From the NCBI RefSeq assembly GCF_052425735.1, contig NC_135770.1:19964001-20028000 (forward strand): a stretch of DNA of 64,000 nt, written 5' to 3'. The position numbers and the translations under genes were made by a program. The notes beneath the pieces were generated by a model. It was not told the DNA's origin. It saw only the letters and a list, made by a program, of their open reading frames with translations, and did no database searches. Below, piece by piece: positions 16,116-63,739 of this stretch. Position 1 is the first letter of the stretch; every line of letters begins with the position of its first letter. Source of the DNA: Oculina patagonica (Eukaryota).

Positions 16116-18489
16116 TTACTCTCGAAATGGTGAGTCTTTAGACAGCAGGAGAGACCATCCTTGAAATGGCTGAACAGACACTGAATCTGAAGTGTCGTCA
16201 GTATGGATGGTAAAACCCGGCATTCCTGCCACAAGTTTGGCAGTGTCAGTCACACCATCCATGTGATTGATGTCGACACCAGCTGGTTTTCTGAGCTGGA
16301 GTGGTAAACTGACCAGGCCGCTCGTCATCTGGCTGATATCCATGTCATCTTTCCTGCCCTCCAAAAACTCGGTTATCCATCCCCTGTAACGATACTTGCC
16401 CTCAATGACCATCCCCGAGCCGTAAGCATTCTCATAAGTGATAACATGACTCCACCATTTCCGATCTGGCTTGCCCTTGTAAGTAGCCAACAATTTGCTG
16501 AACACTAGCTCCACAACATTCCACCACTCTGATGTCAAGCCAAGATTGTACTGTATCGGTTCAAGCAGTGTTCGCAGTACCTTCAGTTTGGATTTTAGTT
16601 TTTTCCAGTCATCTTCAGTGCCTAGCATCTCAATTGCAGGGATTCCGCAACCTCCAAGCATGCTGTAAATAAAATACTCTTGAACTGAATACATCAATGT
16701 GATCTGCGAAACGATCTTCTGTACTGCAGTTGTGGTGCTGAAGTCCGCCGTCATTCCATCCACGAACTCAGGTACTTTGACATTCTCTTGTATTCCCTTC
16801 CCTATTTGATCAAAGAACCAACTGTAGTCAACGGTATAGATGCTTCGATCAGGTACTTCCACTTCAATGGTTTTCTATAATAACAATATTAATATTATTA
16901 ATAAAATGATGATGATGATGGTGTGTCTTAAGTCCAACTTTTTATTATGCAAATTCCGCAAAAACATGTTTTATTGTTTTGTCAACCAACATGGCCGCCT
17001 TGTCACGTGGTTGCAAACCAAGAATTGAATTTTTTCCCGGTTCTCGGTTTCTCGTTCTCCGTTACTCTGTTTAGTAACACCCCTCATGTGTATTTAAAAG
17101 CTTACCTTTCCCTCGTGATCAACAAACATCTTGCGAACGGACTCTTCCTTCGCGTTTCTGTCGATAGCCCCGACGATTCCAATCAATGAGTATCAATAAT
17201 CAATAAAATCAATAGTTATCAATAATAATCAATTGATTGATATTGATTGATATTGATAATCAATTAAAATCAAAGCCGCAATGTTGAGTGATTTTCGATT
17301 TTCATTGATTTTCATTGATTGCCATTGATTGTCATTGATTTCTATTGAAAACTTAAATCGGTTTTATTTTTATTTTTTTTTTTAATAAATCTCACGGACG
17401 AGGACAGAGACCCAATTTTATTTCTGATATCCGATTACTGAAGTAAAGTACCACAGAAACAACAGTAATAATTAACAGTAACTTTTTATTATATTCATTT
17501 CTTTGCTGTATCATCCTATTGACATGTATTGACAACTATTTCAAACATGCATTTCCTGCAATTTAGTTGGTGTGTTCGTTTATATGACATTAACAATAGC
17601 GTTACTCGAACTAGACTTCAATATTGTTTCGTTTTCTCAATTCTAGATAGATCAGTGCAATCAAACAGAAACAATTTAACAATTTAATAAAATTTAACAA
17701 TTTAATAAAATCGACTACACAAGAAATAGAAATCTTCACAGACATGGCGCCGATGATGTGTTTCAGTGTGTTTGCAAACGCGCCGGGAAACGCGTTAAAT
17801 CAAGCAAATGCCTTTGTAGCCGGGTTTTTACTGTTGCACAATCAGCTATTGATTATCAATTAAAATCAATGAAAATCAATGAAATTAAGACGGCTCGGTG
17901 AGTGATTTTCGATTTTTATTGATTATGTAAATTAATCAATATCAATCAATTGATTACTATTGATTAATATTGATTATATTGATTGAAATCAATGATTGAT
18001 TTTCATTGATTGAAATCGTCGGGCGATAGCGCAAGCCACTCGTCTGATAACACTGAACCACCAGTCATCTGGGGAGGTTCGTAATTTCCAGTGGTTGTTG
18101 TAGGCTGTCAGAACGGCAGAAAACAATCCGCAATTTCCAAGCGAATAAATGCTCTCCGTTGATCCCAAGGCGGCAATCATATCTTGTGGAAGAGAGTAAT
18201 TTACCCCCGTATTTGGATGGTAGACAGCTCTTATTTCTCGTTCCGAGGATTGACCCAGCGAGTAATCCTTGATCAACTGTTTTGCTTGGCTGGGTACAAG
18301 TTTGCTGTCTTCGACTTTGACTGGAACCAGATTGATGGCAAGAAGGACAGAATTGACACTCACTCCATCGACCGTGGTGTGTTGACTAATAACAGGAGCC
18401 TTAGCTTTGTTCTTAGCCATCGTGCAAACGGTAAACAAGCAACAGAATTTTCCAACAGTCAGAACAGCCAGAAATCACACTTTGAGCAT
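16116..18489 (-). pseudogene. DUF4419-like copy 1 (two exons, MITE-disrupted, stop in signal peptide)
   Basis: Exon 2 16116-16874; GT-AG phase-0 intron 16875-17105; exon 1 split by a MITE at 17169-18023, and the frame is restored if the MITE and one TSD are removed. Leader reads MLKV*FLAVLTVGKFCCLFTVCTMAKN. Family motifs AYNNHWKLRTSPDDWW, ADFSTTT, CGIP and YRGWITEF are present. Confidence 0.8.
17169..18023. mobile_element. MITE inserted in the copy 1 coding exon
   Basis: TIR cccgacgatt(c/t)caatcaatga, 7-bp TSD cgatagc, subterminal attgat/atcaat arrays. Confidence 0.9.
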
Positions 18490-20519: not shown

Positions 20520-21713
20520 TTAATACTTGCAAAAAGGAGAGTCTTTAGACAGCAGAAGAGACCAGCCTTGGAATGGCTGTACAGACACTGAATCTGAAGT
20601 GTCGTCAGTATCAACGGTAAATCCCAGCATTCCTGCTACAAGTGTGCCACTGTCCTTCACACAGGAGACAGGGTCTTCAATGGTCAGCGGAACAGTAACA
20701 ACACCAGTTGACATGTCGTCAATTTCCAACAGGTCCTTCTTTCCCTCCAAAAACTCGGTAATCCAGCCCCTGTAAGATTTTTGCCCGCCTGACCCAAAAC
20801 TTTCCTGGTAGCTGATAATATGACTCCACCACTCCCTATCTGGTCTCCCGTGGTAAGTAGCCAATAACTCGCTGAAGACTTTCTCCACCAGATCCCACCA
20901 TTCCGATTCCAAACCAAGATCTTTCTCTATCGGTTCAAGCAGTGTTCGCAGTATCTTCAGTTTGGATTTTAACTTGCTCCAGTCGTCTTCAGTGCCTAAC
21001 ATCTCCACTGCAGGGATTCCACAGTCAAGTATCATTTTAAAATGAAAATACTCTTGAACTGAAGACATCAATGTGATCTGCGAAACGATTTTCTGCACTG
21101 CAGTTGTGGTGCTGAAATCTGCCGCCATTCCATCCACGAACTCAGGTACTTTGACATTCTCTTGTATTCCCTTCGCTATTTGATCAAAGAACCAGCTGTA
21201 GTCGACGGTGTAGATGCCCTGGTTAGTTACTTTCACCTCGATGGTTTTCTTTTCTTCGTGATCAACAAACATCTTGCGAACGGTCTCTTTCTTCGCATTT
21301 TTGTCGATAGCGGAGGCGACTCGTTTGATAACACAGAACCACCAGTCATCTGGCGAGGTTCGTAGTTTCCAGTGGTTGTTGTAGGCTGTCAGAACGGCGG
21401 AAAACAGTCCGCAATTTCCAAGTGAATAAACGTTCTCCGTTGATCCCACTGCGGCAATTACTCGATTAGGAGAATCGATTTTACCTAGCATCGAACCTAG
21501 CAGCTTCCTCTCAATCGCTGAGGCTTCGTCATTTGTGTTTTGAGAATCTTGCGCGTACTCGTTGAACAATTCTTTGGCTTGGCTTTGTACAAGCCTGCTG
21601 TCTACAAACTTAGAAGGAACGAGGTTTTCGGCGAGAACAACACAAGTGATTTTCAATCCATCGGCGGTCGTGCGCTGACTGATAAGAGGCGGCTTCGTTT
21701 CGTAGTTACCCAT
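20520..21713 (-). CDS. DUF4419-like protein copy 2, intronless, ~397 aa (starts MGNYETK)
   Basis: Uninterrupted ORF with first in-frame ATG at 21713. Motifs AYNNHWKLRTSPDDWW, FSTTT, CGIP and GWITEF match my recollection of DUF4419 (PF14388); needs an HMM check. Confidence 0.85.
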   Translation of the reverse strand: MGNYETKPPLISQRTTADGLKITCVVLAENLVPSKFVDSRLVQSQAKELFNEYAQDSQNTNDEASAIERKLLGSMLGKIDSPNRVIAAVGSTENVYSLGNCGLFSAVLTAYNNHWKLRTSPDDWWFCVIKRVASAIDKNAKKETVRKMFVDHEEKKTIEVKVTNQGIYTVDYSWFFDQIAKGIQENVKVPEFVDGMAADFSTTTAVQKIVSQITLMSSVQEYFHFKMILDCGIPAVEMLGTEDDWSKLKSKLKILRTLLEPIEKDLGLESEWWDLVEKVFSELLATYHGRPDREWWSHIISYQESFGSGGQKSYRGWITEFLEGKKDLLEIDDMSTGVVTVPLTIEDPVSCVKDSGTLVAGMLGFTVDTDDTSDSVSVQPFQGWSLLLSKDSPFCKY

Positions 21714-22007
21714 CAGTCGGGTGAGGAGCAAGAAAACAAAACACAAGACGAGAGCTACCGAGGACTGATAACGTAGGACTGATAACGTAGAGTGAGAAAA
21801 TATTCACAAAAGGTAGGAGAATTTTTTTATGGAATGAGGTCGACTGCCTGCTCTCGCGGTAGGTACGTTATGTATGGAAATTTTTGTGTCCCCAGATCCG
21901 CTGAGCGAGGTGAGCGCAGGCGATGGATCCCTCCTCGCGTCTCACGTGACCGACCCTGCGTTTTTTCCGCGGTGCCGTCTGAAGTACACCCACGCGACGT
22001 TTATGTG

Positions 22008-22705
22008 ATGAAGTCTTTGTAATTTTTTGTCGTTTTTTTGTTTTATTTCAATCTTGCTTTCTGCCAAGCCTTGCTTGTCAAACTACACTGGTGCAGTCTA
22101 CGAGCATGTTACATTCTTTGTCGTTGAAAACAAGACTGAATTAACTCACCCAGCTAGCAGCTTTGGAAGTCATGCAGAAGAACCTCGACGTTTACCTTAT
22201 TGTTATTTATTTTCGCGGGACTTAATTTTCGCGATTTTCAAAAAATCGCAAAATTAAAGACCCACGAAAATTTATTTCAAACGTTTCTATTGTACTTTTT
22301 ATGTTAATTTCGTATTTTTGGCCAAATCGCGAAAATTAAGTCCCGCGAAATATTCCCGTTCTATTTTCGCGAAATTAAGTTCCCGCGAAAATAAGTAGCA
22401 ATAAGGTACCAAACAGAGGCAGTCCTGGCAAAATCCAAGGGTGCCGACATCAAAGTCTTTCCAGAGGATGGTTTGTATGGCTTTTACTTTACACGCGAAC
22501 AAATCTTTCCTTTTCTTGAAATTATCACGGATCCATCAAAGATGGAAAATGTTGGATTCCCTGCAGAGATCCCGATCGTTTCGACAACACTGAAGTGTTA
22601 GGGGAGCTGAGCTGCATTGCGCAAAACTCTTCCATTGCGGTGGTTGCTAACATGGGCGATGTGCAGTATTGTGACAAGTCGGATCCACACTGCCCCGATG
22701 ATGGC
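22008..22705 (+). pseudogene. Truncated vanin/pantetheinase pseudogene
   Basis: Near-identical to 34241-34722, with a stop at codon 5 (ATG AAG TCT TTG TAA), small indels, a MITE insertion, and truncation after CDKSDPHCPDDG. Confidence 0.9.
22195..22406. mobile_element. Tc1/mariner-type MITE in the vanin pseudogene
   Basis: ccttattg...ttcgcggga / tcccgcgaa...caataagg TIR with TA TSD. The empty site is seen in the intact gene (gtttaccaaac, ~34421). Confidence 0.9.
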
Positions 22706-24487: not shown

Positions 24488-25636
24488 CTACTTGAGAAAT
24501 GGTGAGTCTTTAGACAGCAGAAGAGACCATCCTTGGAATGGTTGTACAGACACTGAATCTGAAGCATCGTCAGTGTGGACAGTGAAACCCAGCATTCCTG
24601 CGACAAGCTTGGCATCATCCTTCACACAAGAGACGGGATCTTCCATGATGAGTGGAACAGTGACAAGGCCAGTCGTCATGTTATAGATTTCCGTGGGACT
24701 TTTCTCTCCTTCTAGGAACTCGGTAATCCAGCCCCTATACCCTGAGGTTCCACCTGACTCCCAAGCACGTTTGTAGCTCATAATATGACTCCACCATTTC
24801 CTATCTGGTATCCCCTGAAAAGTAGCCAGTAACTTGCTGAAGACGTTTCCCACTAGATCCCACTACTCCGATGACAAACCAAGATCTTTCTCTATGGGTT
24901 CAAGCAGTGTTCGCAGTACCTTCAGTTTGGAATTTAATTTGCTCCAGTCCTCCTCAGTGCCTAGCATCTCCAATGCAGGGATTCCGCAGAGAGTCCCCAT
25001 CCTAAAGTCGAAATACTCTTGAACTGCATGCATCAATGTGATCTGCGAAACGATTTTCTGTACTGCAGTTGTGGTGCTGAAATCCGCCGTCATTCCATCC
25101 ACGAACTCAGGTACTTTGACGTTATCTTGTATTCCTGTTGCTATTTGATCAAAGAACCAGCTGTAGTCGACTGTATAGATGCTTGTGTCGGGCACAATCA
25201 CCTCGATGGTTTTCTTTTCTTCGTGATCAACAAACATCTTGCGAACTGACTCTTTCTTCGCGTTTTTTTCGATGGCGCAAGCGACTCGTTTGATAACACA
25301 GAACCACCAGTCATCTGGGGAAGTTCGTAGTTTCCAGTGGTTGTTGTAGGCTGTCAGAACGGCAGAAAACAATCCGCAATCTCGAAGCGAATAAATGTTC
25401 TCAGTTGACCCCAAGGCGGCAGTCATTTCATTAGGACGATCGAATCTGTTCTGTTTTAAGTGTTTTCTTTCTTGCGCGTACTCGTTGAGCAATTCCTTCG
25501 CTTGGCTTTGTACAAGCCTGCTGTCTTCAAACTTAGAAGGAACGAGTTTATTGGCGAGCACGACACAATTGATTTTCAATCCATCGGCCGTCGTTCGCTG
25601 ACTGATAAGAAGCGGCTTGGTTGCGTTGTTGCCCAT
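24488..25636 (-). pseudogene. DUF4419-like copy 3, single nonsense codon
   Basis: TGG>TAG at 24863-24865 (SE*WDLV versus SEWWNLV). The rest is in frame and very close to copy 4. Confidence 0.85.
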
Positions 25637-30923: not shown

Positions 30924-33734
30924 TTACAACAACAACAATTTATTGAGGTATTTCCATAAAAATACATGGCATTACCTACTTACACTTGAGAAATTACAAG
31001 TAGTATCAGAAATAAAACAAAAATGCGATTTTATCATTTGGAAAATAAAGTTTCATGTCTAAGAGACATAGCTTGAAAAACAAAAGCAGCAGTTGATCGA
31101 CAAACAGCAGGATCAATGCTGTTACAAAGAAATAAAGATTTTGCATTAATATCAAACTCGTTAAAAATACTATATTTGGCGGTTATTTCATTAAAGAACT
31201 TTAAACGTATGTTTTCGTATAGCTTGCATGAAAATAAGAAATGCATTTCGTTTTCAATTTCATCCGAATGGCAGAAAGAACAGATTCTCAAATTAATAGG
31301 AGTCTTGGGTATTGTGTGTCTACCAGTTTCGATACGTAATTTGTGATTCCCAAGTCGAAATTTGCTAATGGCAGTTCTGTGGTGAGGATTGTTGATTGCG
31401 TCCAGAAAACTAGATTTTTTGGTATCTTTTTTAAATGAATGATAAAATTGTAATTTTCTGTTTGTGCTAATTAGTTTTAGTTGATGAGCTATTAACGCTT
31501 TGCTAATGTTTTGCTTAATGTAAGAAGTAAAGAGTTTTCCGTTGTTTTCATTTAATATTAAAGAGCTCGAGTTGTATTTATTGCATAACTGATTCATTTT
31601 AAGCATTAGACCTGTCTGGGTTTTATCAGCCATCTCCTTAGAAAGCTGTAGACATTGCTTAGCGATGTTATTTTCTGGTAAGCTCTGAAGATGAATCCAA
31701 AATTTTACTATGGAGGTTTCGATGGCTAATTTTAGAGGAAGCCTTCCAAGTTCATTTCTGGTTGCAACATTTGGGCATTGTTTATTCACTCCTAAGAATT
31801 GTTTGCAAAAATATATGTGTGTTTTTTCGATGTCATCTTTCTCCCAATTGTTGAAATCATCTTTATCGTAGATACCCCAAACTTCTGAGCCGTACAGTAA
31901 AATAGGGAGAAAGAGAGAATCAAAGAGTTTATTTGTGACACTAAGGGACAATTTTGAAAAATCCAAGTAACGGCGAGTAGCAAAGATGGATCTTCTTGTT
32001 TTATCTTTTAAGTTTGATTTACAGTCTCTAAAGCTTCCGTTTGCAGAAAAATTTATACCAAGATAAGTGTAATTGTTGACAATTTCAATTTTGTCATTGT
32101 TTATATGAAAATAATGCTTGTCGAGTAAAGATTTCCTGCATTTCTTTTGGAAGATGACAACTTTCGTTTTCTTTGGATTAACGGACAGCAGCCAATCGTT
32201 ACAGTATTTTTCAAGAATGGAAAGTGCCTTCTGCAGACCTTTAGCTGAGTGAGAGATTAATACTAAGTCGTCTGCGTAAAGTAAACAGTTTAAATTGGAG
32301 CCGTTAGGTAGAGCGATAGGATCTGTGTCTTCTCGGTCTAGTAAAAAAGGGATTTCATTTAAGTATAAATTAAATAACATGGGCGACAGAATGCAGCCTT
32401 GACGTACACCTTTCTGATAATCGAAAAATTCAGTCCTTTGGTCACCATACTTAACAGAACATTTAGTTTTTGAGTAAAGATTTTTAATCAAATCATAGAA
32501 ATTTCCACCAATCTTATAATGTAAAAGTTTGTAGAATAGTCCATCATGCCAAACCGAATCAAAAGCTTTCTTGAAGTCAATAAAACAAGTGTACAGTTTG
32601 CCTCTTGCTGTATGACTGACATATTTATCCACTAATGTTCTTAGGGTAAAAATATGATCTGATGTGCGATGATTAGGTAAAAAACCGATTTGAGCTTGAT
32701 GTAATATGTTTTGTTGAAGTACATGATTTTTCAACCTGGCATTGAGGACCGAGGTAAAAAGTTTTCCGAGACAGCTACTAATGCATATTCCCCTGTAGTT
32801 AGAAGGGTCGTTTTTATTTCCCGATTTATAAATTGGTGTAATTAATCCTTCGCACCAAGTGCTAGGAAAGAAACCGCTTTTCAGAATAAGATTAAATAAT
32901 TTGCAAAGGGCAGTGATAAAATATTGCATTCCAGCTTTTAGCATTTCATTGCGAATCTTGTCAGGACCGGGGACTTTCTTTGATCGAAGTAATTTTGTCA
33001 TAGATTCTATTTCAGCAGGTGTAATAATTGTATCTAAATAATTGTGGGTGGTTTTTGTTTCTTCTAAGCTGAAGAGTTTCTCCCCTAAAATATTATTGCG
33101 AGGTAATAATGATGAGGTATTTATGGACGAATGTAAATCTTGAAAATGGTGATACAACTTGTCAACAGGAATATCATGATTGTTGGAAGGGGGGTTGTGG
33201 CCTTCCTTCATTAATTTGAGGTTATCCCAAAATTTATGACTGTCTTTGTGATTAACAAGGTCTTCAATTTGGGAATTGAGATGTTTCGATTTTTTGTACT
33301 TAATCAATTTCTTGAATGTTTTGCGAGTCGTATGGTAATCATGTCTAAGTTTTGCATCGTAAGGATTTCTATGTTTTTGGTTGGAAAGCATACTGAGATT
33401 CTTTCGCAGAAGTGCACAGTCTTTATCAAACCATAAGTTATGTTTCTTTGTTTTCTTTTTAGGACAAGCGATTTTGAGAGATCGTAAACATGTATCAGTT
33501 ATGATTTTAGTGAATTGTTCTGTTGCCAAATCAATTCCTTTACAATCAAAGGTAAAGTTAGTCTTCTCAAAGTTCGATAGACGTAAAAGAACGTCATCTT
33601 GTTTTAAGGCATTGCGAAAATTTTCAAAGGATGATTGATCCCAGATGAACTGTTTTGGATTATTGAAAGTTTTTACATTTGTATGACTGGTAGTTTTGGA
33701 AGAGGCTGGTGTTTGGAGATTTAACCAGCAGATG
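30924..33734 (-). mobile_element. 5'-truncated non-LTR retrotransposon (probably RTE-X-like clade)
   Basis: Open ORF2 from the end of the endonuclease through RT; 3' aataaa followed by a (TTG)n tail at ~30924-30943. No clear TSD. Confidence 0.88.
31034..33529 (-). CDS. LINE ORF2 reverse transcriptase with C-terminal CCHC zinc knuckle (5'-truncated; frame open to ~33730)
   Basis: PGPDKI, NYRGI, FIDFKKAFDSV, GVRQGCILSP, LLYADD, YLG and HKLRIETGRH...CSFC...HFLFSC motifs with no stops over 831 aa. Confidence 0.9.
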   Translation of the reverse strand: MATEQFTKIITDTCLRSLKIACPKKKTKKHNLWFDKDCALLRKNLSMLSNQKHRNPYDAKLRHDYHTTRKTFKKLIKYKKSKHLNSQIEDLVNHKDSHKFWDNLKLMKEGHNPPSNNHDIPVDKLYHHFQDLHSSINTSSLLPRNNILGEKLFSLEETKTTHNYLDTIITPAEIESMTKLLRSKKVPGPDKIRNEMLKAGMQYFITALCKLFNLILKSGFFPSTWCEGLITPIYKSGNKNDPSNYRGICISSCLGKLFTSVLNARLKNHVLQQNILHQAQIGFLPNHRTSDHIFTLRTLVDKYVSHTARGKLYTCFIDFKKAFDSVWHDGLFYKLLHYKIGGNFYDLIKNLYSKTKCSVKYGDQRTEFFDYQKGVRQGCILSPMLFNLYLNEIPFLLDREDTDPIALPNGSNLNCLLYADDLVLISHSAKGLQKALSILEKYCNDWLLSVNPKKTKVVIFQKKCRKSLLDKHYFHINNDKIEIVNNYTYLGINFSANGSFRDCKSNLKDKTRRSIFATRRYLDFSKLSLSVTNKLFDSLFLPILLYGSEVWGIYDKDDFNNWEKDDIEKTHIYFCKQFLGVNKQCPNVATRNELGRLPLKLAIETSIVKFWIHLQSLPENNIAKQCLQLSKEMADKTQTGLMLKMNQLCNKYNSSSLILNENNGKLFTSYIKQNISKALIAHQLKLISTNRKLQFYHSFKKDTKKSSFLDAINNPHHRTAISKFRLGNHKLRIETGRHTIPKTPINLRICSFCHSDEIENEMHFLFSCKLYENIRLKFFNEITAKYSIFNEFDINAKSLFLCNSIDPAVCRSTAAFVFQAMSLRHETLFSK

Positions 33735-45970: not shown

Positions 45971-46030
45971 ACAAGCCATTTCCTTTATTCAGTTTAAAGT
46001 TTTTGTTGCCTTGTTTTGCTCACTAGTGTA

Positions 46031-46220
46031 CAGTCAACTCTCTCTGAAATGGACACCTGGGACCGGCTCCAACTGTCCATCTTAGAGAGGTGTCCGTCGT
46101 CTTTTTAGTGAGTTTAGTTACAGTAAAATGGCTGAAGAACGGCAGGGACGGGACCAACACCAGGTGTCCGTCTTATGGAGGTGTCCGTCTTATAGGTATC
46201 CATTAAGAGAGAGTTGACTG
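46031..46220. mobile_element. Short pogo/Tigger-like MITE in the copy 4 3' UTR
   Basis: cagtcaactctctc / gagagagttgactg with TA TSD. Confidence 0.85.
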
Positions 46221-46279
46221 TAATCACTATTCTGCCCTATTTGAACAATCTGTCCAGCTGTTAATGAGTCTTCAGGAGC

Positions 46280-47428
46280 TTACTTGCAAAATGGGGAGTC
46301 TTTAGACAGCAGAAGAGACCAGCCTTGGAATGGCTGTACAGACACTGAATCTGAAGTGTCGTCAGTGTGGACAGTGAAACCCAGCATTCCTGCGACAAGC
46401 TTGGCATCATCCTTTATCCTAGACACGCGATCTTCAATGATGAGTGGAACAGTGACAAGACCAGTCGTCATGTTATAGATTTCCGTGGGACTTTTCTCTC
46501 CTTCCAGGAACTCGGTAATCCAGCCCCTGTACCCTGAGGTTCCACCTGACTCCCAAGCACGTTTATAGCTCATAATATGACTCCACCATTTTCTATCTGG
46601 TATCCCCTGGTAAGTAGCCAGTAACTTGCTGAAGACGTTTTCCACTAGATTCCACCACTCCGACGTCAAACCAAGATCATTCTCTATGGGTTCAAGCAGT
46701 GTTCGCAGTACCTTCAGTTTGGAATTTAATTTGCTCCAGTCGTCCTCAGTGCCTAGCATCTCCACTGCAGGGATTCCACAGAGAGTCCCCATCCTAAAGT
46801 CGAAATACTCTTGAACTGCATGCATCAATGTGATCTGCGAAACGATTTTCTGTACTGCAGTTGTGGTGCTGAAATCCGCCGTCATTCCATCCACGAACTC
46901 AGGTACTTTGACGTTATCTTGTATTCCTGTTGCTATTTGATCAAAGAACCAGCTGTAGTCGACTGTGTAGATGCTTGTGTTGGGCACAATCACCTCGATG
47001 GTTTTCTTTTCTTCGTGATCAACAAACATCTTGCGAACTGACTCTTTCTTCGCGTTTTTTTCGATGGCGCAAGCGACTCGTTTGATAACACTGAACCACC
47101 AGTCATCTGGCGAGGTTCGTAGTTTCCAGTGGTTGTTGTAGGCTGTCAGAACGGCAGAAAACAATCCGCAATCTCGAAGCGAATAAATGTTCTCAGTTGA
47201 CCCCAAGGCGGCTATCATTTCATTAGGACGATCGAATCTGCTCTGTTTTATGTTTTCTCTTTCTTGCGCGTACTCGTTGAGCAATTCCTTCGCTTGGCTT
47301 TGTACAAGCTTGCTGTCTTCAAACTTAGAAGGGACGAGTTTTTTGGCGAGCACGACACAAGTGATTTTCAATCCATCGGCCGTCATGCGCTGACTGATAA
47401 GAGGCGGCTTGGTTTCGTTGTTGCCCAT
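46280..47428 (-). CDS. DUF4419-like protein copy 4, intronless, ~382 aa (starts MGNNETK)
   Basis: Uninterrupted ORF with all family motifs; ATG at 47428. Confidence 0.88.
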   Translation of the reverse strand: MGNNETKPPLISQRMTADGLKITCVVLAKKLVPSKFEDSKLVQSQAKELLNEYAQERENIKQSRFDRPNEMIAALGSTENIYSLRDCGLFSAVLTAYNNHWKLRTSPDDWWFSVIKRVACAIEKNAKKESVRKMFVDHEEKKTIEVIVPNTSIYTVDYSWFFDQIATGIQDNVKVPEFVDGMTADFSTTTAVQKIVSQITLMHAVQEYFDFRMGTLCGIPAVEMLGTEDDWSKLNSKLKVLRTLLEPIENDLGLTSEWWNLVENVFSKLLATYQGIPDRKWWSHIMSYKRAWESGGTSGYRGWITEFLEGEKSPTEIYNMTTGLVTVPLIIEDRVSRIKDDAKLVAGMLGFTVHTDDTSDSVSVQPFQGWSLLLSKDSPFCK

Positions 47429-47429
47429 C

Positions 47430-50400
47430 GTGTGAGGAGCAAGAAAACAAAACACACCACGGAAGCTACCGGGGACAGATAATCAAGAAAGTCAGCTCAG
47501 TTCGAGGTCGTCGAGAGTATTTAAGGCATTCACTGCTGCTTAAAACGCTTTGAGGACTTTTTAGACTTTTTAGACGTCCAAACACGGATGTCTTATTGGT
47601 CATGTTACAGTATCTAATAATAAATATTACGACATAAAATTTAACCACGTATAAGGTCGGGACGTGACTAGTCGACAGGTTTCTGCGACAAGTCGTGTGT
47701 ACTGCTTCAAGCCGCTGTCACAAGGCGCTTGACACACAGCGAATTTTATTTGGAATAGTGGGAATATGAACTAAGTCTACACACGCTGCGTCAACCTGCT
47801 TTCGCTCATTTTGTCGCTGCTACCAGTCGCACGAATTCAAACTGGGTTGAATTCCTGCGACTGATCGCAGCGACAAAATTCTAATTCAAGAGAGTAGCAT
47901 TTAATTTCAGATCGAATGAAAGAAGTGTTTTACCGTTGCGAGTATTTTTCAGTTTGCTGGTTCGTCTTAATTTTCTATGGGAACACTTATAGCAACACTA
48001 AACTTTACAGGAGAAAGTTGTCATGATCTGATGAAAGACCTGACAGTGTTTCCCGTCGCAGCGCGATTATACGGCACGTGATTCATTAATTATCTTTATG
48101 TCGCAGACTTTTGCCACGCTATCACGTTTGCTAAACAAAACTTGAAATCCTTAGATGTAGTTGGTGATCTGTTCGATATAGTTAAGTACTGTAATGTCTA
48201 AAGTCAAAGCCGGCCTTAACATATGTCTTGCTAGAAAACGGTAGTACGTGATGCACTTAATGTGAATATTTGGACCTTTACCACTAAACTGAAACTACTT
48301 CCTGTTAATTAAACGTGGAAGAAATATCTACGACGATCTGTTCGCTAGAGTTAAGTACTGTACTGTCCGAAGTCAAAGTAGGTCTTAGTTTGCGTACGTG
48401 ATGCACTTGAAAGTAAATATTTGGGCCCTCTAGCTCTCTGCATGCTAAACTACTTCCGCGTGTAACAGGAAGTAGTAGCTAGAAACGCTTCGCGTGATGA
48501 AATGTCTTGTTTTGACAGCTTAGAAGACCAATACCTTAACTCAGCCAATGAGAATGTTTTTTGCCGGTCCAATATTTCGAATTAAAGCATAGACGGCAAC
48601 TCACTTGCAAATTATTCGTTTCTAATTATCAATGAGTCAGCAATTTCGACATAAGCCTACCGCTATATATAGAAAGCTGGTGTACCTACTAAAAACTAAA
48701 AACTAAAAAGAACTTAAACTTAGTATGTGTGGGCTGTGGTATTGCTTGAGGGATACTCCCCATGTAGAAGCTATAGCTTTTAGTAATTAGTCTCTGAAAG
48801 TCACGCTGTTGTGTTCGCTACACATAATATTTAGGGACTTCAAGCAACCATGACAGCGACGCTGAGGACAACGTTCATTAAAATATGAATTACTTTACCT
48901 TCGAATCTTGCGCGATAATCTAGATCCATTCTGTTTATCTATAATGGTTAGAGCTATTTCAGAACTGGATATAATGTAAGACAGCGTTCATGTCGAAAAA
49001 GAAAGTTGACCTTTTTTTAGTTTTTGTCATAATTGAAAGCAGCCTCTTGAGTATCGACAGAATTGAAAGCTCTTGTTGCCTTTCTTTTGCCAACTAGTAC
49101 AGCCACTATTTTGTCGTATGCATGTGCTTAATCTACATAAACAAAGCTAGGAATTGTTCAACTGTTTCTTCTGGCAACTTCAGATTACGTTGTTTGTATG
49201 AATAATTCCAGTAAGTCTACGGAGTTTTCTTAAGAAATGGCGAGTCTTTAGACAGCAAAAGAGACCAGCCTTGGAATGGCTGTACAGACACTGAATCTGA
49301 AGTGTCGTCAGTGTGGATAGTAAATCCCAGCATTCCTGCTACAAGCTTGGCTTCATCCTCCACGCAAGAGATGGGATCTTCAATGGTGAGTGGAACAGTG
49401 ACAAGACCAGTTGACATTTGATTGATTTGCATGAGGTCTTTCATTCCCTCGAGGAACTCGGTAATCCAGCCCCTGTACCCTGAGTCATCACCTGACTTGA
49501 AAGCTTCTTTGTAGCTCATAATATGACTCCACCATTTTCTATCAGGTATCCCCTGGTAAGTATCCAGTAACTTGCTAAACACTTTTTCCACTAGATTCCA
49601 CCACTCCAATTCCAAACCAAGATCGTTCTCTATGGGTTCAAGCAGTGTTCGCAGTACCTTCAGTTTGGATTTTAGTTTGCTCCAGTCGTCCTCAGTGCCT
49701 AGCATCTCCACTGCAGGGATTCCGCAGCGAGTCGTCATCTTAAATTTGAAATACTCTTGAACTGAAGACATCAATGTGATCTGCGAAACGATTTTCTGCA
49801 CTGCAGTTGTGGTGCTGAAATCCGCCGTCATTCCATCCACAAACTCAGGTACTTTGACGTTCTCTTGTATTCCCTTCGCTATTTGATCAAAGAACCAGGT
49901 GTAGTCAACGTTATAGATACTTCTCTCAGGTACTACCACATTGATGGTTTTCTATAATAACAATTTTAATATTAATAACATTAATAATTGATGATGATGA
50001 TGATGATATTAAAATAAACAGATACAGCATTAATAAAAATTTAAAAAAAATTACGTAAGATTAACCTTACGAAATTATTAAATTTTAAAAACACAGTGAC
50101 ATTGTACACTAATGAATGACTGTTTCCAAAGGAAACAGCTAATTTTGTTTCCTGAGAATCTAAATGTTTCCCGAGGCGAAAAGGGAAACAAAATTAACTG
50201 CTTTCCTGAGGGATCAGTCATTAAGTGTTTTATTATATAGCTCGTTGGTCAACATTTGTGGGCAACATTGTAATGTTACCCTCTGACGTCAGAGATTTTG
50301 GCGGGAAACAGTTTGGGAAACTTTCAACCTCGTTCCCAGGGCTTTTCCCTGGAAAAGGGAAACTTTTAGCGGAAAACAGCCTTTTTAATTCTACAATGTC

Positions 50401-52715
50401 ATGTGACCTCGAACAAGCCAATAACAGCGCGCCCTGTTGGGAAAAATTCTAAATATTATAACGATAACACTTAATGAAAAGGCTCATATAATTTATAAAT
50501 TAAAAGCTAACCTTTCCCTCGTGATCAACAAACATCTTGCGGACGGACTCTTTCTTCGCGTTTCTGTCGATGGCAGAGGCGACTCGTCTGATAACACAGA
50601 ACCACCAGTCATCTGGTGAGGTTCGTAGTTTCCAGTGGTGGTTGTAGGCTGTCAGAACGGCAGAAAACAATCCGTAATCTCCAAACGAATAAACGTTCTC
50701 CGTTGACCCCAAGGCGGCTATCATTTCATTTGGACGATCGAATCTGCTCTGTTTTATGTTTTCTCTTTCTTGCGCGTACTCGTTGAGCAATTCTTTGGCT
50801 TGGCTTTGTACAAGCCTGCTGTCTTCAAACTTCGAAGGAACGAGTTTTTTGGCGAGCACGACACAATTGATTTTCAATCCATCGGCCGTCGTTCGCTGAC
50901 TGACATAAGGCGGCTTCGTTTCGTTGTTGCCCATCGTGTGAGGAACAAGAAAACAAAACACACCACGGAAGCTACCGGGGACAGATAATGAAGAAAGTCA
51001 GCTTAGTTCGAGGTCTTCCAGAGTCCAGGGTCCAGAGTATTAAAAAGGTTCACTGCTGCTCAAAACGCTTTAAGGACTTTTTAGACGTCCAAACACGGAC
51101 GTCTTATTGTCTTGTTACAGTGTCTAATAATAAATATTACGACATAAATTTTAACCACGTATTAGGTCGGGACGTGACTAGTCGACAGGTTTCTGCGACA
51201 AGCCGCTGTGACAAGGCGCTTGACACACAGCGAATTTTATTTGGAATAGTGGGAATATGAACTAGTTTTCTAATTAACTATGGCAAAAATACATAAGTCT
51301 GCACACGCTACGTCAACCTGCTTTCGCTCATTTTGGCGCTGCTACCAGTCGCACGATCGCGAATTCAAACTGGGTTGAATTCCTGCGACTGATCGCAGCG
51401 ACAAAATTCTAATTCAAGATAGCAGATTATTGTTATGTCATTTAATTTCAAATCGAATAAAAGAAGCGGCCATTGCGAGTATTTTTCAGTTTGCTGGTTC
51501 GTCTTTATTTTCTATGGGAACACTTATACCCACACAAAACTTTACAGGAGAAAGTTGTCATAAACTGATGAAAGACCTGACAGTGTTTTCCGTCGCAGCG
51601 TGATTATACCGAACGTGATTCATTAATTATCTTATGTCGCTATCACGTTTGCTACCCAAAACTTGATTTCCTTAGATATAGTACGGTGATCTGTTTGCTA
51701 TAGTTAAGAACTGAAATGTCTAAAGTCAAAGCCGGCCTTAACATATGTTTTGCTAAAAAACGGTAATACGTGATGCACTTGATGTGAATATTTGGACCTT
51801 TACCTCTAAACTGAAACTACTTCCTGTTAAACGCGGAAGAAATATCTGCGACGATCTGTTCGCTATAGTTAAGTACTGTATTGTCTAAAGTCAAAGCCGG
51901 CCTTAACATATGTTTTGCTAGCGAACAGTAGTACGTGATGCACTTGAAAGTAAATATTTGGGCCCTCTAGCTCTCTGCTGAACTTCTTCCTGTTACACGC
52001 GGAAGTAATAGCTTGAATCTCCTTGGGTGATGAAATATCTTGTTTCGACAGATTAGAGGACCAATAATTTAATTCAGCCAATTAGAATGTTTTATTGCCA
52101 GGCGGCAACTGATTTGCAGATTATTCGTTTCTAATTATCAATGAGTGAGCAATTTCGACATAAGCCTACCGCTATATATAGAAAGCTGGTGTACCTACTA
52201 AAAACTAAAAAGAACTTAAACTCAGTGTATGTGGGCTGTGGTATTACTTGAGGGATACTCTTCTTATAGAAGCTATAATATGGTAGTAATATGGCAAATA
52301 AAGTCACGTTATCGTGTTCGCTACACATAATATTTAGAGACTTCAAGCAACCAGGACAGCAACGCTGAGGACAACTTCGATTAAAACTGAGTTATTTTAC
52401 CTACGAATCTTTCTCGATAATCTAGATCCATTCTGTTTATCTATCATTGTCAGAGCTATTTCAAACCTGGATATTATGTAACACAGCGCTCATGTCGAAA
52501 AAAAACTTTTTTGAATTTCGCTTGAATCAATTCGTGATAATTGAAAGCAGCCTCTTGAGTATCGGCAGAATAGTGAAAGCTTTTGTTGCCTTTATTCTGC
52601 CAACTAGTACAGCCACTATTTTGTCGTATGCCGCTTAATTTACATAAACAAAGCTAGGAATTGTTTAACTGTTTCTTCTGGCACCTCAGATTATGTTGTA
52701 TGTATGAATAATTCC
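47430..52715. repeat. Duplicated intergenic spacer (47430-49215 versus 50935-52715) defining a ~3.5-kb tandem unit
   Basis: Collinear, highly similar non-coding sequence including an internal ~170-bp dimer. Partial copies at ~23250-24480 and ~60860-62350. Confidence 0.9.
49217..50934 (-). CDS. DUF4419-like protein copy 5, two exons, ~385 aa (starts MGNNETK)
   Basis: Exon 1 50512-50934 (...VDHEGK), GT-AG phase-0 intron 49952-50511, exon 2 49217-49951 (KTINVVVPERSIY...). The spliced frame is open. Confidence 0.85.
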
Positions 52716-52718
52716 AGT

Positions 52719-54407
52719 CTACGGAGTTTTCTTGAGAAATGGCGAGTCATTAGACAGCAAAAGAGACCAGCCTTGGAATGGCTGTACAGACACTGAATCT
52801 GAAGTGTCGTCAGTGTGGAGCGTAAAACCCAGCATTCCTGCGACAAGCTTGGCAGTGTCCGTCACACCAGACACGAGGTCTTCAATGGTGAGCGGAACAT
52901 TGACAAGACCAGAAGTCATGTCACGGATTTCCATCAAGTCTTTTTTCCCCTCTAGGAACTCGGTAATCCAGCCCCTGTACCCTGAGGAATCACCTGACGC
53001 GAAACGACGTTTGTAGCTCATAATATGACTCCACCATTCCCTATCTGGTCTCCCCTGGTAAGTAGCCAGTAACTTGCTGAACACTTTCTCCACTAGATTC
53101 CACCACTCTGATGTCAAACCGAGATCATTCTCTATGGGTTCAAGCAGTGTTCGCAGTACCTTCAGTTTGGATTTTAGTTTGCTCCAGTCGTCCTCAGTGC
53201 CTAGCATCTCCACTGCTGGGATTCCGCAGCGAGTCTTCATCTTAAAGTGAAAATACTTTCGAACTGAATACATCAATGTAATCTGGGATACGATTTTCTG
53301 CACTGCAGTTGTGGTACTGAAATCCGCCATCATTCCATCCACGATCGAACTCGGGCACTTTGACGTTCTTTTGTGTTCCCTTCGCTATTTGATGAAAGAA
53401 CCAGCTGTAGTTGACTGTGTAGATACTTTGGCCAGGCACTGCCACGTTGATGGTTTTCTTTCCCTCATGAACAACAAACATCTTGCGAACGGACTCTTTC
53501 TTCGCGTTTTTGTCGATAGCGCAAGCGACTCGTTTGATAACACAAAACCACCAGTCATCTGGGACACCCCTCTGTAACAGACCTGGTGACACCTGATTTT
53601 CCACCAGGTTTTCAACACAAAATCGACCAGGGAAGTCAAAAATCCACCAGGTTGATTACTTACTTTTTGTATGCAATACACTTACACACTTAGCGGGGTA
53701 ATCGTGCACAATTCTGAGCCGCGCGCGCTGTTCAATTCGCTCTGAATCATTCACAAGCTCGTATTACATACAGAAAAGGAAACATATCTGTTTTGTCTCT
53801 TTAGTGACCTGCATGACAGCAGAACAAGCGACAAAAACAATAGAACAAAGTTAACAATTACTTTTTGCTATATTTACATCAAGTTATAGTCAATTATTAA
53901 ATCATGTATATTTTTGCCGCGCGTCGTTTTCTTCTGTTTATAGAGATTTTGGTTGATATTTTCCTGCCCAGGTAAACAAAATTCCTCACCGGGGAGAAAT
54001 AAAATTGACCAGGGATTTTTCAGATAATCACCAGGGAACAGGGAGGACAAATTTCCACCAGGGAGGGCAAAATAACCCACCAGGTCGAGTTTCACCAGGT
54101 CTGTTACAGAGGGGTGTTCTGGGGAAGTTCGTAGTTTCCAGTGGTAGTTGTAGGCTGTCACAACTGCAGAAAACAATCCGCAATTTCCAAGCGAATAGAT
54201 GTTCTCCGTTGATTCCAAGGCGGCAGTCATTTCTGTAGGGAAATAGAACTCGGCTTTGAGCAACTCCTTCGCTTTGCTTTGTACAAGCTCACTATCTTCA
54301 AATTTAGAAGGAAGGAGGCTATTCGCAAGCACGACAGAATTAATTTTCAATCCATTGGCCTTCGTTCGCTGGCTGATTGGACTTGACTTGGTTTCGATAG
54401 CTTCCAT
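52719..54407 (-). pseudogene. DUF4419-like copy 6 (MITE insertion plus 4-bp frameshift)
   Basis: MITE at RTSP^DDWW; a 4-bp insertion near 53343 shifts the frame after VPEF. Confidence 0.88.
53564..54117. mobile_element. Young MITE in copy 6
   Basis: Perfect 26-bp TIR acacccctctgtaacagacctggtga; 6-bp TSD tctggg. Confidence 0.92.
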
Positions 54408-55408
54408 CGTGTAAGGAGTAAGAAAACCAAACACACCACAAGAGCTTCCGGGTGTAGATAATGTAGAGTGAGGGAATATTCACGAAAGGCGGTTATTTGA
54501 GCCCTTGCTACTAAACAACTTCCTGTTTGCACGTGCTGATACATCAGTCATGCTCTGACAGCTTAAAGTGGCCCACAATGAGCTCTCTTGTAATCTGGAT
54601 TACCGGCTTACAATAATTAAATATTTCGTTGAAAGATTTTCGTACAAACTACATGTACATGCACTGGTCCGTAAAAAATATCGTGGGTATAAATGCTTAT
54701 AATCATTTGTAATGTTTCTTCAGAATGGTTTCCTTTTCAACTGAATGCGTTTAATTCGCAATTATGTTTGGTCTGTTTGGCTTCTTTTCATTAATAAATT
54801 CGTTACTAAAACACTTTTAGTATCCGGGGATCATTCAATTATCTGGATTTTAACAAACGGGAAACGAAAGGCGAACGACTTTAAGTAGGTTTATCTATGA
54901 CATCTATACGGGTAACATACAAATAATGTTTTTAATAGTTTCTTTATATCTTTTTTTTAGTTTTGGCTTTATCTCTGTAATAGCTGGCTTAATAGGTTTT
55001 TTAAACTGTTCTTCCGTTTCCATCCTATTTTATTATCCATGTCATTCGGCATAAAACGGCATGAAAACAAATTTAGACATTTTACCATAATTTCCGTCGT
55101 GGTTTGATTGCAGAACAAACACCACATGTTAACAACAAGAATTTTTCCTAAGAAATTTTCCACACTCAGTAAAGATACAACTGAGAAAACGTGTTTAACT
55201 GCTATAACAAAGAAACCGAACCCTCCCACAATTGCTTTGGCAAGTTCAGAATGAGATGACCGGCTCATGCTCCTTAGAGGTATCCGCTTACTACCATGCC
55301 GATGAATGCTTTGCAAGTTGTGAGAAGACCTATTATATAAAGCAGCGATAATTCGAATCAAAGTCTCTTCGAGATATCGACGTTTTTGCATGAAGTATGA
55401 GTCGAAGG

Positions 55409-55846
55409 CCCAGGGGGGGGGGGGGGGGGGTACTCCGGCCTGTAAATGACGGGGATGATCGAATGGAGGCAAAACTCATGACCCAAAAAAATCCCTTAGT
55501 CTTCCGACATTACCCCAAAAAATCCCTGGACCAAAAATAACCCCCACAAAAATCCCTTGTCAAATTACACCTAAATTGCCAGGAGGGGCAATAATATAAC
55601 ACAAAGAAAATCATAAAAAATTGAACGCTGTTGTGTGTTTATTCATCATACCATAAATACGCCAAGGCCCCGTCAAGGCACTTTAGTTCGTTTTTAATAC
55701 CCAAAAAATCCCCTATTTTAATCAAGTCACCCAAAAAATACTTGCCAAATTCTCCAACCCAAAAAAATCCCCGAATCGAAAATTTCAAACCCAAAAAAAT
55801 CCTTCGATCATTCCCGTCACTTACAAGCCAGAGTACCCCCCCTGGG
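55409..55846. mobile_element. MITE with CCCAGGG termini and 8-bp TSD
   Basis: TSD gtcgaagg; same family as 37570-37972. Confidence 0.88.
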
Positions 55847-56797
55847 GTCGAAGGTTTATCCTGTGCATTGTTCTTCGAACTTAACATTACAGTTTCTTTG
55901 TAGTTTAGTTTAACAATTTCCTATCTTCGCGGAGGAAATGCAGCCATATAATTTTGTCAAAAATGGCTCGTCCGCGCCGGGTATTTATACACATATTCCT
56001 TAACATTACACAAATAAACAGTGCAAATTTCACCGAGATCTGACAATTCTATACTTTAAAATTGCAAGGACCTTTCGAGGCAGTCGATTACGGCAGCGAA
56101 ATTAGCAAATGAAACAGCAAAATATGCGTTCGACGCTTTGTTTTTGCGACGCCATATTTGAATTGTTATAGCCGGGTAGACCGCTGTTCAATGTGTTGAA
56201 GGTCGTATCGTTACGATTGCTCCACGAAAAAGCACGAAAAAAAATACGGATATTTCCGACTACTGTCGGAGAAAACATTGCGCATATAATTGGGTCGTAA
56301 ACAAATCGTTATACTCAAGCTGCGTTTTGTCAAGGCTCTGCGAGGGTTGGATATCAAGATCCAGGATTAAACAAAAGCCATATATACAGTGAATGCTTTC
56401 GAATTATATTTGAAGATGAAATACGAAAGAATTTTGCTGTCTTTGACTGAAATTCCACTCGAACTGCGTAGATACGATCGCATGTTGTAAAGCCGATTCA
56501 TGCAACATTGCTGTCATTCCCTGTCAACGCGAGGTCACGTCCCTAACGACCTAGGCTGATGACGAAATAGAGTTGCGCTTACATGTAGCGACCAAATTTG
56601 GCCTAATTTTTAACCGCTCCTAAGCTAAAAGAAGCCCCCATCTCTTGCATTTGTTTTAACTTCAATAATATCTTTGAAAAGAGCGAGTTTTTTGGTATGG
56701 TTTATTTTTGACGTTTGTAATTTTTAAACGATGTAAGTGCTAGTGATTATTTATTCGTGTTTTAGTTACGCAATCCATTGTTTGTGCGACGCTTTGG

Positions 56798-58307: not shown

Positions 58308-60120
58308 TCATATAAGACTTTTAAGCTTACTTACAGGGTCTTTAATGGTGAGTGGGACAGTGACAAGACCAGCTGTCATGTCACGGATTTCCGTGGGGCC
58401 TTTTTCTCCCTCCAGGAACTCAGTAATCCAGCCCCTGTACCCTGAGGTTCCACATGACGCAAAAGGACGTTTGTAGCTCTTAATATGACTCCACCATTCT
58501 CTATCTGGTCTCCCCTGGTAAGTAGCCAGTAACTTGCTGAACACTTTTTCCACTAGATTCCACCACTCCGATTCCAAACCACGATCGTTCTCCAGTGCTC
58601 CAGTCCTCTTCAGTGCCTAGCATCTCCACTGCAGGGATTCTGCAGCGAGTTGTCATCTTAAAGTCGAAATACTCTTGAACTGAATACATCAATGTGATCT
58701 GCGAAACGATTTTCTCCGCTGCAGTTGTGGTGCTGAAATCCGCCGTTATTCCATTCATGAACTCAGGTACTTTGACGTTCTCTTGTATTCCCTTCGCTAT
58801 TTGATCAAAGAACCAGCTGTAGTCGACGGTATAGATGCTTTTGTCATTTTGTCTTTTTGTCTGAATCTCGAATGCCTCATGTTTGCCTCATGTTGTTAAT
58901 TTAATAAACAGACAACAGTCGCAATAACAGCGATTTTTCGGCTTCTCGGTCTCATTTTGATCTCAATTTCGTCGCTAAAATGGATCGTGACTACCTCGCG
59001 AAATTTAAGACGATACGATATGTCATCATTAGCGATAATTTTTATCGCTTATGATGACGGTTTTGCATGGAAAGAATTCTTCTTCAGGTATATGTCTGAA
59101 CGCTTATTAAATAAGCGGACTTAGGATGACTTGGTTTGACTTAGGCTAAGACAGACTTAGTGTGTAGTGTGAACCCAACATATAATAGAGCAGCTCAAAA
59201 CAGGAAGTTAAAAATTTCTTTTTCCACCAAGAACGATCAGAATGCGAAAAATGTGCCAATCACAACAACAACATCAACAACAACCATTTTATTTTGCCAA
59301 ATTAAATAGATAATTAATTACAGCATAACATAAATTAACTAAAATAGGCAAAAAACCAACCCAGAATAGAAACAAACTAAACGAGCTGAGTAGTTACAAA
59401 ATAAATTTAATTGCTTTGACAAGGTTGTACATAAAAGAAGACAAAAGTAAAATAAGACAAGTAATAAGTAATTAAGTACCATGCAACAACGGCGTTTTAG
59501 CGAAATTTTGGGTTAAAAAAGAAATAATCAAGCTACATGGTTAATTATTAACAGTTAATTAACTGACAACTGACAAATGGCCAAAATTTTAACTGACAAC
59601 TGACATTTGTACTCCCCCATCCAGACCCTCTCGATTGTTTTCCTTCCCTCATGATGAACAGACATCTTGCGAACGGCCTTTTTCTTCCTGTTTTTATTGA
59701 TGGCGCCGGTGACTTGATTGATAACACAGAAACACCAGTCATCTGGCGAGGTCCGTAGTTTCCAGTGGTTGTTGTAGGCTGTCAGGACGGCGGACAACAA
59801 TCTGCAATCTGTAGGTGAATAAATAGTCTCCGTTGATCACAGGGCGGCAATGATTTTTTTGGAGTGTCACTTCTCCGTTTTACTCCGCCGCAACAACAAG
59901 CGAAAATTCGTCTACGTTGACTGGCTCTGTCAGACGCCAAACTGTACCAAAATTTCATGAGTTACTCTTTCGCTTGGTTAGCACGAAGCAATGCAAAGGA
60001 TTTGCTATCTTCGAGCTTAGAAGGAACGAGGTCATCGGCGAGTGAAACAGAATTGACTTTTAACCCATCGGCTGTGATAAGCTGACTCATAGCAGGCAAC
60101 ATGGTTGTATTCATGGCCAT
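58308..60120 (-). pseudogene. DUF4419-like copy 7, heavily degraded
   Basis: Insertion at ~58846-59630 after KTIE, an internal deletion near 58590, C-terminal truncation after KDPVS, and frameshifts in the 5' part. Confidence 0.85.
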
Positions 60121-60156
60121 TGTACAAGGAGTAAAATCAATAAACAGTACTAATTA

Positions 60157-60821: not shown

Positions 60822-60972
60822 GGTAGAAAATCAAGCCTACCACGATAGCTACCGGAGACAGACAGTCACGCTATAACGTTTGCTACACAGAACGTGATAT
60901 TCTTTGGTGTAGTTCGACGATCTGTCAGCTAGACTCTGGTACTGTACTGTCGAAGTCAAAGCCGGCCTTATA

Positions 60973-62359: not shown

Positions 62360-63739
62360 CTATTTAGTACAGTCAGATTTCGGGCACTTCAGATTACGTT
62401 GTTTGAATATGTCTTCGGGAGCTAGCTTGCGAAATGGCGAGTATTTAGACAGTAGAAGAGACCAGCCATGGAATGGCTGTACAGACACTTCTGGGGAGTC
62501 GTCAGTGTGAATAGTAAAACCCATCATTCCTGCTACAAGTGTGGCATTGTCCTTCACACAAGTACCTTCAATGGTAAGTGGAACATTGACAAGACCAGAA
62601 GTCATGTCACTGATTTCCATCACGTCTTTTTTCCCCTCTAGGAACTCGGTAATCCAGCCCCTGTACCCTGAGGAATCACCTGACGCGAAAGCATCTTTGT
62701 AGCTCATAATATGACTCCACCATTCCCTATCGGGTCTCCCCTGGTAGGTAGCCAGTAACTCGCTGAAGACGTTTTCCACTAGACTCCACCACTCCGATTC
62801 CAAACCAAGATCGTTCTCTATGGGTTCAAGCAGTGTTTGCAGTACATTCAGTTTGGATTTTAACTTGTTCCAGTCCTCCTCAGTGCCTAGCATCTCCACT
62901 GCAGGGATTCCACATAAAGTTAGCTTATAGCCAAAATACTCTTGAACTGAATACATCAATGTGATCTGCGAAACGATTTTCTGCACTGCAGTTGTGGTGC
63001 TGAAATCCGCCGTCATGCCATCCACGAACTCAGGTACTTTGACGTTCTTTTGTATTCCCTTTGCCATTTGATCAAAGAACCAGCTGTAGTTGACGGTGTA
63101 GATGCTTGTGTCGGACACAATCACCTCGATGGTTTTCTTTTCCTCGTGATCAACAAACATGTTGCGAACGGACTCTTTCTTCGCGTTTCTGTCGATGGCG
63201 CTGGCGACTCGTTTGATAACACTGAACCACCAGTCATCGGGGGAAGTTCGTAGTTTCCAGTGGTTGTTGTAGGCTGTCAGAACGGCGGAAAACAATCCGC
63301 AATCAGTTCCACGAATTGAATAAATATTCTCTTCTGATCCCAGGACGGGAATCATTTCATAGGGGATATCGTCGAAATGGGGGGAATCGATGCGAGCATT
63401 AAAATCTCGGCGGGCAATTGCCTTCTGTAGGAACCACTTCGCTTTCCCTGACACAAGATTGGTATCTTCGACTTGAGCTGGGACAAGGTTATTGGCGAGT
63501 AAAACATAAGTGATATTTAAACCATCGGAGGTGGTACGTTGACTAACATTAGGTGGCCTGGTTTCGTTTTTGGGTAACTCATTCGCTTGGCTTCCTACAG
63601 AGTTGTCGACGAGTAAAACAGAAGTAACATTCATACGCTGACTAACAGCAGGGGACTTTGTTTCGTTCTTGGCCATGGTATAAGCAGTAAAATCCTTTAT
63701 CAGCAGACAGATAAGCAGACAAGTCACAAAAGGTGCCAT
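62360..63739 (-). CDS. DUF4419-like protein copy 8, intronless, ~459 aa, predicted secreted
   Basis: Open ORF. The likely start MAPFVTCLLICLLIKDFTA is a signal peptide (an upstream ATG exists at 63787). Duplicated N-terminal segment, seven N-glycosylation sequons and an extended C-terminus. Confidence 0.87.
   Translation of the reverse strand: MAPFVTCLLICLLIKDFTAYTMAKNETKSPAVSQRMNVTSVLLVDNSVGSQANELPKNETRPPNVSQRTTSDGLNITYVLLANNLVPAQVEDTNLVSGKAKWFLQKAIARRDFNARIDSPHFDDIPYEMIPVLGSEENIYSIRGTDCGLFSAVLTAYNNHWKLRTSPDDWWFSVIKRVASAIDRNAKKESVRNMFVDHEEKKTIEVIVSDTSIYTVNYSWFFDQMAKGIQKNVKVPEFVDGMTADFSTTTAVQKIVSQITLMYSVQEYFGYKLTLCGIPAVEMLGTEEDWNKLKSKLNVLQTLLEPIENDLGLESEWWSLVENVFSELLATYQGRPDREWWSHIMSYKDAFASGDSSGYRGWITEFLEGKKDVMEISDMTSGLVNVPLTIEGTCVKDNATLVAGMMGFTIHTDDSPEVSVQPFHGWSLLLSKYSPFRKLAPEDIFKQRNLKCPKSDCTK

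Follow-up and report, generated by a model that had tools for sequence, protein, structure and literature searches.

We report here a tandem multigene cluster of the DUF4419 (domain of unknown function 4419) family, still changing in content, on a chromosome of the stony coral Oculina patagonica. The window, i.e., the whole stretch of 64,000 nucleotides that was analysed (C13:19,964,001-20,028,000), belongs to a contig of 38.35 Mb within the 529-Mb assembly of this scleractinian. Using tblastn with the 391-residue frame of one copy (c04) as the query, we found eight co-oriented minus-strand DUF4419 paralogues within positions 16116-63787 of the window, numbered c01 to c08. In hmmscan, c02, c04, and c08 matched PF14388 with E-values of 3e-59 to 3e-61 and 201-208 bits (gathering cut-off 25 bits), and the whole genome holds 24 matches above the cut-off. 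A sequence-only reading of the window had proposed eight co-oriented DUF4419-like paralogues and had named the PF14388 profile as the check; the identity (E ~1e-59) and the count are both borne out, but the extent was understated. The array ends ~20 kb outside the window, near coordinate 83600, and consists of 15 units over ~67 kb, six of which are intact. With moderate confidence, we interpret the locus as a genuine array evolving by birth, conversion, and death of its units, in which the surviving copies are constrained and encode what would be intracellular, enzyme-like or ligand-binding proteins.

Composition and turnover of the array

Within the window, four units are intact (c02, c04, c05, and c08) and four are dead (c01, c03, c06, and c07), as had been tallied earlier from the sequence. 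Three of the intact genes are open single exons on the minus strand: c02 (20523..21713; 397 aa, N-terminus MGNYETK), c04 (46280..47428; 382 aa, N-terminus MGNNETK; the basis of our structure model), and c08 (62360..63739; 459 aa), in which the N-terminus includes a hydrophobic leader and a duplicated segment. The fourth, c05 (49217..50934, minus strand; 385 aa), has two exons (exon 1, 50512-50934; exon 2, 49217-49951). The description of the genes as mostly intronless stands. The c05 intron (49952-50511) is 560 bp long, has GT..AG borders, and lies in phase 0 between codons 150 and 151. The coding sequence of the dead copy c01 is broken at this codon too, by 231 bp with matching splice-site flanks, and the interruption is therefore an intron common to both genes and not a transposon lesion. 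The 381-aa NCBI model of c09, the twin of c05 in a duplicated block described below, uses the same splice. In contigs of a DNA control (X2), alternative joints occur within the c05 intron at 50008-50396 (316-bp skips, and replaced letters at 50314-50396), which suggests that an indel polymorphism or a nested repeat accounts for the length of this intron, 560 bp against 231 bp in c01.

To assess transcription, we used contigs of X5 and X17, two presumptive RNA runs that derive from separate organisms and separate studies. The c05 splice junction (49951>50512) is carried by X5 and X17 contigs and not by X2, and depth within the intron falls to ~0 in X5 and X17, unlike in X2; therefore c05 or its twin, at least one of them, is transcribed and spliced in presumptive RNA. 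The spacer between c05 and c04 (47260-49288) is also fully covered by contigs of X5 and X17, including one X17 contig of 2,021 nt, with the c05 intron empty. It may be that transcription reads through from c05 into c04, or that the 5' untranslated region of c04 is long.

The four dead copies, likewise on the minus strand, are pseudogenes at graded stages of decay, as the sequence-only reading had described. The copy c03 (24491..25636) retains 93% amino acid identity to c04 and has a TGG>TAG change at 24863-24865 as its sole lesion. In c01 (16116..18441; coding pieces 18441-18022, 17201-17106, and 16874-16116; intron 16875-17105), exon 1 is broken by a non-autonomous transposon of 820 bp (17202..18021) with terminal inverted repeats (TIRs) CCCGACGATTyCAATCAA and a 7-bp target-site duplication (TSD), GCTATCG. 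Full-length copies of this element with 96-99% identity are present on other chromosomes, and it has therefore been active recently. The pseudogene c06 (52722..54434) combines a frameshifting 4-bp insertion near 53345-53348 with a miniature inverted-repeat transposable element (MITE) of 545 bp (53572..54116), which has perfect 26-nt TIRs (ACACCCCTCTGTAACAGACCTGGTGA), a TSD of CCCAGA, and at least 385 candidate copies genome-wide. The decayed copy c07 (58320..60147) has stops, frameshifts, and a missing C-terminus. The spacers are duplicated along with the genes (e.g., 47772-49953 and 51294-53459, with 85% identity), again in agreement with the earlier description.

In our interpretation, new units are added through unequal crossing-over, partly homogenised via gene conversion, and lost to transposon insertion, nonsense, and frameshift mutations. 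The survivors are under purifying selection, with at least one transcribed and spliced. The co-oriented units, duplicated spacers, mixed-age pseudogenes, species-specific clades, and conversion-like mosaics resemble those of classical birth-and-death and concerted-evolution families such as immune and chemoreceptor clusters. Unlike those clusters, the coral array shows no evidence of diversifying selection and is not known to serve in recognition, and its products appear intracellular. The array itself is an ordinary gene-family expansion, with tandem growth and transposon-driven gene death.

Duplicated block and probable gene conversion

A block of ~6.6 kb (49740..56370) is ~100% identical to a second copy located 17,374 bp downstream, mostly outside the window. 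At the edges of the block, the left flank is ~87% identical over ~1.2 kb, and identity then falls to ~50% on both sides. Because the block identity ends at its edges, c05 and c09 form a mosaic pair with exon 1 and the intron in common and distinct second exons. Such a block results from duplication or conversion in the very recent past, or else from an assembly error. The latter explanation, in which this part of the array would have been falsely duplicated, draws on the near-complete identity over ~6.6 kb and its abrupt fall at the edges. We regard it as quite unlikely, given that the two copies differ in both flanks, including the separate second exons of c05 and c09. The remaining paralogues show DNA differences of 5-25%, well beyond those expected between alleles, no alternative contig bearing array genes was found in the assembly, and no runs of N were found in the window or its flanks. 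These three observations also tell against a false duplication of the block, and for the array as a whole they make an artefact very unlikely; haplotype mis-assembly, which the sequence-only reading had named among the outcomes that would undo it, is therefore ruled out at that scale.

Possible traces of sequence exchange are not limited to the block. The hydrophobic leader of c08 (MA..CL..LL.KDFTA.T) is shared with P0006, a homologue from the coral Desmophyllum, and is found in no other listed homologue. A clade uniting the cores of the same two genes was nevertheless rejected by the approximately unbiased (AU) test (p 0.0125), a result to be read with caution because the group was picked after inspection of the tree. 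Synonymous divergence among the paralogues is also uneven along the gene (c04 numbering), where the proportion of synonymous differences (pS) rises tenfold from 0.05 at residues 186-255 to 0.5 at residues 256-324, a pattern that tracts of conversion or constraint on the nucleotide sequence itself may explain. The conflict between leader and core, the identical block, and the uneven pS together point to gene conversion as a probable process alongside birth and death. Species-specific clades, as expected from lineage-specific gain and loss, are seen in the tree, but conversion, as in the leader and the identical block, mimics the same pattern.

Relatives, origin, and surroundings of the array

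Nematostella, Acropora, Montipora, Porites, Orbicella, and Desmophyllum all have homologues; the family is present in many stony corals and spans Anthozoa. With Nematostella as the outgroup, the stony-coral sequences fell into four DUF4419 subfamilies. Within the array subfamily, the genes of Oculina and Desmophyllum form separate species clades. In Desmophyllum pertusum, a comparable cluster (OS493_007276-007285 on contig MU826828.1) consists of DUF4419 genes that stand in tandem and in one orientation and belong to the array subfamily; one of them carries the same hydrophobic leader as c08. The genes of the two arrays group by species in the tree, and they have therefore been duplicated independently, or homogenised, after the split of Oculina and Desmophyllum. 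In Oculina itself, a stretch of 1.5 Mb on one chromosome contains three DUF4419 loci: the array, a three-gene cluster (C13:18528164-18542152), and a single gene (C13:19504742-19505605). The PF14388 profile is matched over its full length by the single gene (C13:19.50 Mb) but only at positions 2-214 of 303 by the array subfamily, owing to divergence of the C-terminal beta-sheet region in the latter. A further copy, on another chromosome (C12:23545950-23546612), derives from the array, falls within the array clade in the tree, and seems to carry a frameshift.

These data also bear on the suggestion that the family entered the coral lineage horizontally from a giant virus, protist, or bacterium and was then amplified. 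In its favour, most of the genes lack introns, the family has a patchy distribution across life and is frequent in giant-virus contigs, and a bacterial member exists (the Bacteroides thetaiotaomicron control was matched). Yet DUF4419 genes are found in Nematostella and also in many stony corals, where they make up four old subfamilies, two copies of the array share a spliceosomal intron, and the surroundings are ordinary animal DNA with long interspersed nuclear elements (LINEs) and a vanin gene. From this anthozoan spread, the shared intron, and the animal context, any transfer could only be ancient. A recent horizontal origin, which the sequence-only reading had entertained, is thus not supported by the subfamilies, the three clustered Oculina loci, or the intron, and we consider horizontal entry followed by amplification quite improbable.

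In the 20-kb gap between c03 and c04, the array is interrupted by two LINE-like elements and by a vanin-like gene without introns. The first element has an open reading frame (ORF) of 831 aa on the minus strand (31034..33529) with a reverse-transcriptase YADD motif seen in translation, and the second, also on the minus strand (41547..43806), has three ORFs in succession, as read from their translations. The vanin/pantetheinase-like gene (34241..35803, plus strand; 520 aa) carries PF00795 and PF19018. A 5' fragment of a vanin-like gene (22002..22705, plus strand), split by an insert of ~210 bp containing an inverted repeat, stands head-to-head with c02 at a distance of ~290 bp and is a duplicate of the complete gene with 87-97% identity. 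Because c02 and c03 have upstream sequence in common, the ancestral unit may have been a divergent DUF4419-vanin pair. Repeats are also conspicuous, with a 34-36-bp satellite of ~20 copies and a 116-bp tandem repeat adjoining the second LINE (4440-6164 and 40570-41408). Directly 3' of the c04 stop (46001-46200), every run shows a spike in depth of 100- to 1000-fold together with many short joints, which looks like a very high-copy repeat.

Predicted products, viral relatives, and possible roles

The structure of c04 was modelled with AlphaFold2 (69 sequences), giving a predicted local distance difference test (pLDDT) score of 81.8 and a predicted template modelling score (pTM) of 0.81, with a pLDDT of 93 for the C-terminal half alone. 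Foldseek searches with the whole protein and with the C-terminal domain found no solved structure or Swiss-Prot model at E<=1e-3, and a profile search against PDB sequences and a feature-based search of the ESM Atlas gave no match either. VIA-align against 48,161 chains reached a best Z of 5.1 (7.0 for the domain), covering only a helical hairpin of ~50 residues. The significant structural matches were other family members only, either DUF4419-named or unnamed: the top matches among AlphaFold Database clusters include DUF4419-named models (E 1e-26 to 1e-10, template modelling scores of 0.5-0.65), and the top row from the ESM Atlas is a DUF4419 cluster. Structure prediction with Foldseek, recommended earlier as a check, thus returned a confident model that resembles its own family and no solved structure.

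Near-invariant residues of the protein include His100, Asp109, Trp111, Arg132, Cys217, Asp230-Trp231, Trp282, and Gly302-Trp303, and the coral copies share the motifs NNHW, PDDWW, DFSTTT, CGIP..GT..DW, WWS, and GW with the wider PF14388 family. The stretch most constrained among the paralogues, PEFVDGMTADFSTTT, with a ratio of nonsynonymous to synonymous differences (pN/pS) of 0.04, sits in a poorly modelled segment. The N-termini are hydrophilic (M[GAE]xN..), and c02-c05 start with MGxxxT/SK, a myristoylation-type beginning. By inspection, with no dedicated predictor, no signal peptide was seen in most copies, and a short hydrophobic leader was seen only in c08 and its Desmophyllum counterpart. 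From the model and these features, the product is probably an intracellular, partly membrane-tethered, enzyme-like or ligand-binding protein. We infer that the array encodes alpha/beta proteins of ~380 residues whose conserved core (His, Asp, Arg, Cys, Asp, and several Trp) most likely builds an enzyme-like or small-ligand-binding pocket. Variation among the paralogues would lie mainly at the N-terminus, with the MGxxxT/SK start of c02-c05 on one side and the hydrophobic leader of c08 on the other, and the array probably delivers one activity to different membranes or compartments at variable dosage.

Beyond corals, an exhaustive search (E<=1e-3) gave 5,102 DUF4419 clusters at 50% identity, and the family occurs in animals, fungi, protists, bacteria, giant viruses, and insect DNA viruses. 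Foldseek against BFVD returned 14 significant viral matches (E 8e-17 to 1e-4), among them LbFV ORF1, proteins of the Anomala cuprea and Diachasmimorpha entomopoxviruses, and proteins of Catovirus, Tupanvirus, Yasminevirus, Pithovirus, and Marseillevirus. Assignment of viral proteins to the family has been reported (PMC5381508; PMC7125106). The viral proteins have the same predicted fold as the coral ones, but they are only 14-21% identical to them and are encoded by single genes in viral genomes. Two distant relatives lie on metagenomic contigs of nearly all orphan genes (L013:10001-11101 and L015:2968-4059), one with Pox_VLTF3 two genes upstream of DUF4419 and the other with an ankyrin gene nearby; both contigs are probably giant viruses. 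Such recurrence in giant and insect DNA viruses suggests an accessory, stress- or host-microbe-related role rather than a housekeeping one. Long members of the family contain only tandem DUF4419 domains, plus one C1 domain. The literature on DUF4419 is very sparse, and the papers that mention it assign no function; no earlier description of a tandem DUF4419 array with pseudogenes was found in it, and the gene identifiers of the coral orthologues had no match in the searchable literature.

The sequence-only reading had favoured a family of innate-defence or host-microbe effectors, engaged in an arms race and diversifying to recognise pathogens or symbionts. Fast turnover and species-specific clades would fit such a role, as would the relatives in giant and insect DNA viruses, two of which (entomopoxvirus entries) are named apoptosis inhibitors, and the variable patches at residues 50-63, 196-215, and 286-304 (pN/pS 0.7-1.2). 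Selection, however, tells a different story: the pairwise ratio of nonsynonymous to synonymous substitution rates (dN/dS) among paralogues is 0.30-0.51, and sliding windows gave 0.04-0.3 for the core. The sole window above 1 with ample synonymous change is the indel-rich linker (residues 50-63, ~1.1), while that at residues 236-255 reaches 1.07 owing only to very low pS. Signal peptides are absent except in c08, PHROGs and NCBIfam gave no match, and PADLOC gave none for the coral protein or for three of four distant relatives, the fourth (P0229) having one marginal MTase_II match (E 0.0097). No experimental basis was found in the literature for the viral names, whether "inhibitor of apoptosis" or "eEF-3 like", and no baculovirus protein (Apsup, Ac112-113) was among the 14 significant BFVD matches, though Apsup was not compared directly by sequence. 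A proposed link to Apsup and apoptosis inhibition found no support in the viral models or the literature and was dropped. A defence or effector role is hence not supported, and we hold it to be unlikely.

We therefore return to the array of constrained copies with intracellular, enzyme-like or ligand-binding products, against which several points must be counted besides the choice of group in the AU test. The MG start is present in only about one-quarter of coral homologues; the RNA status of X5 and X17 is only guessed, and their contigs cannot separate c05 from its identical twin; and no raw reads on the array genes came from a poly(A) run of a sister organism. Domain fusion, neighbourhood, and literature gave no clue to function, so that the biochemical role is put forward purely by inference.

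Conceivably, DUF4419 could be a cell-autonomous factor with a new fold that acts in the conflict of hosts with viruses or microbes (e.g., in the control of cell death or stress) and that viruses have copied, with the coral array as the host side, though we give this idea little credence. If true, cnidarians or protists would have such a factor in common with giant and insect DNA viruses, and the host side would present differently targeted N-termini. In essence, the locus adds a member to a known, uncharacterised family, one that is large and has neither a function nor a solved structure and almost no literature. Since it offers several intact paralogues (with c05 or its twin spliced in presumptive RNA), natural N-terminal variants, and a confident model without a solved match, the coral array provides a practical starting point for solving the structure and studying the biochemistry of DUF4419.

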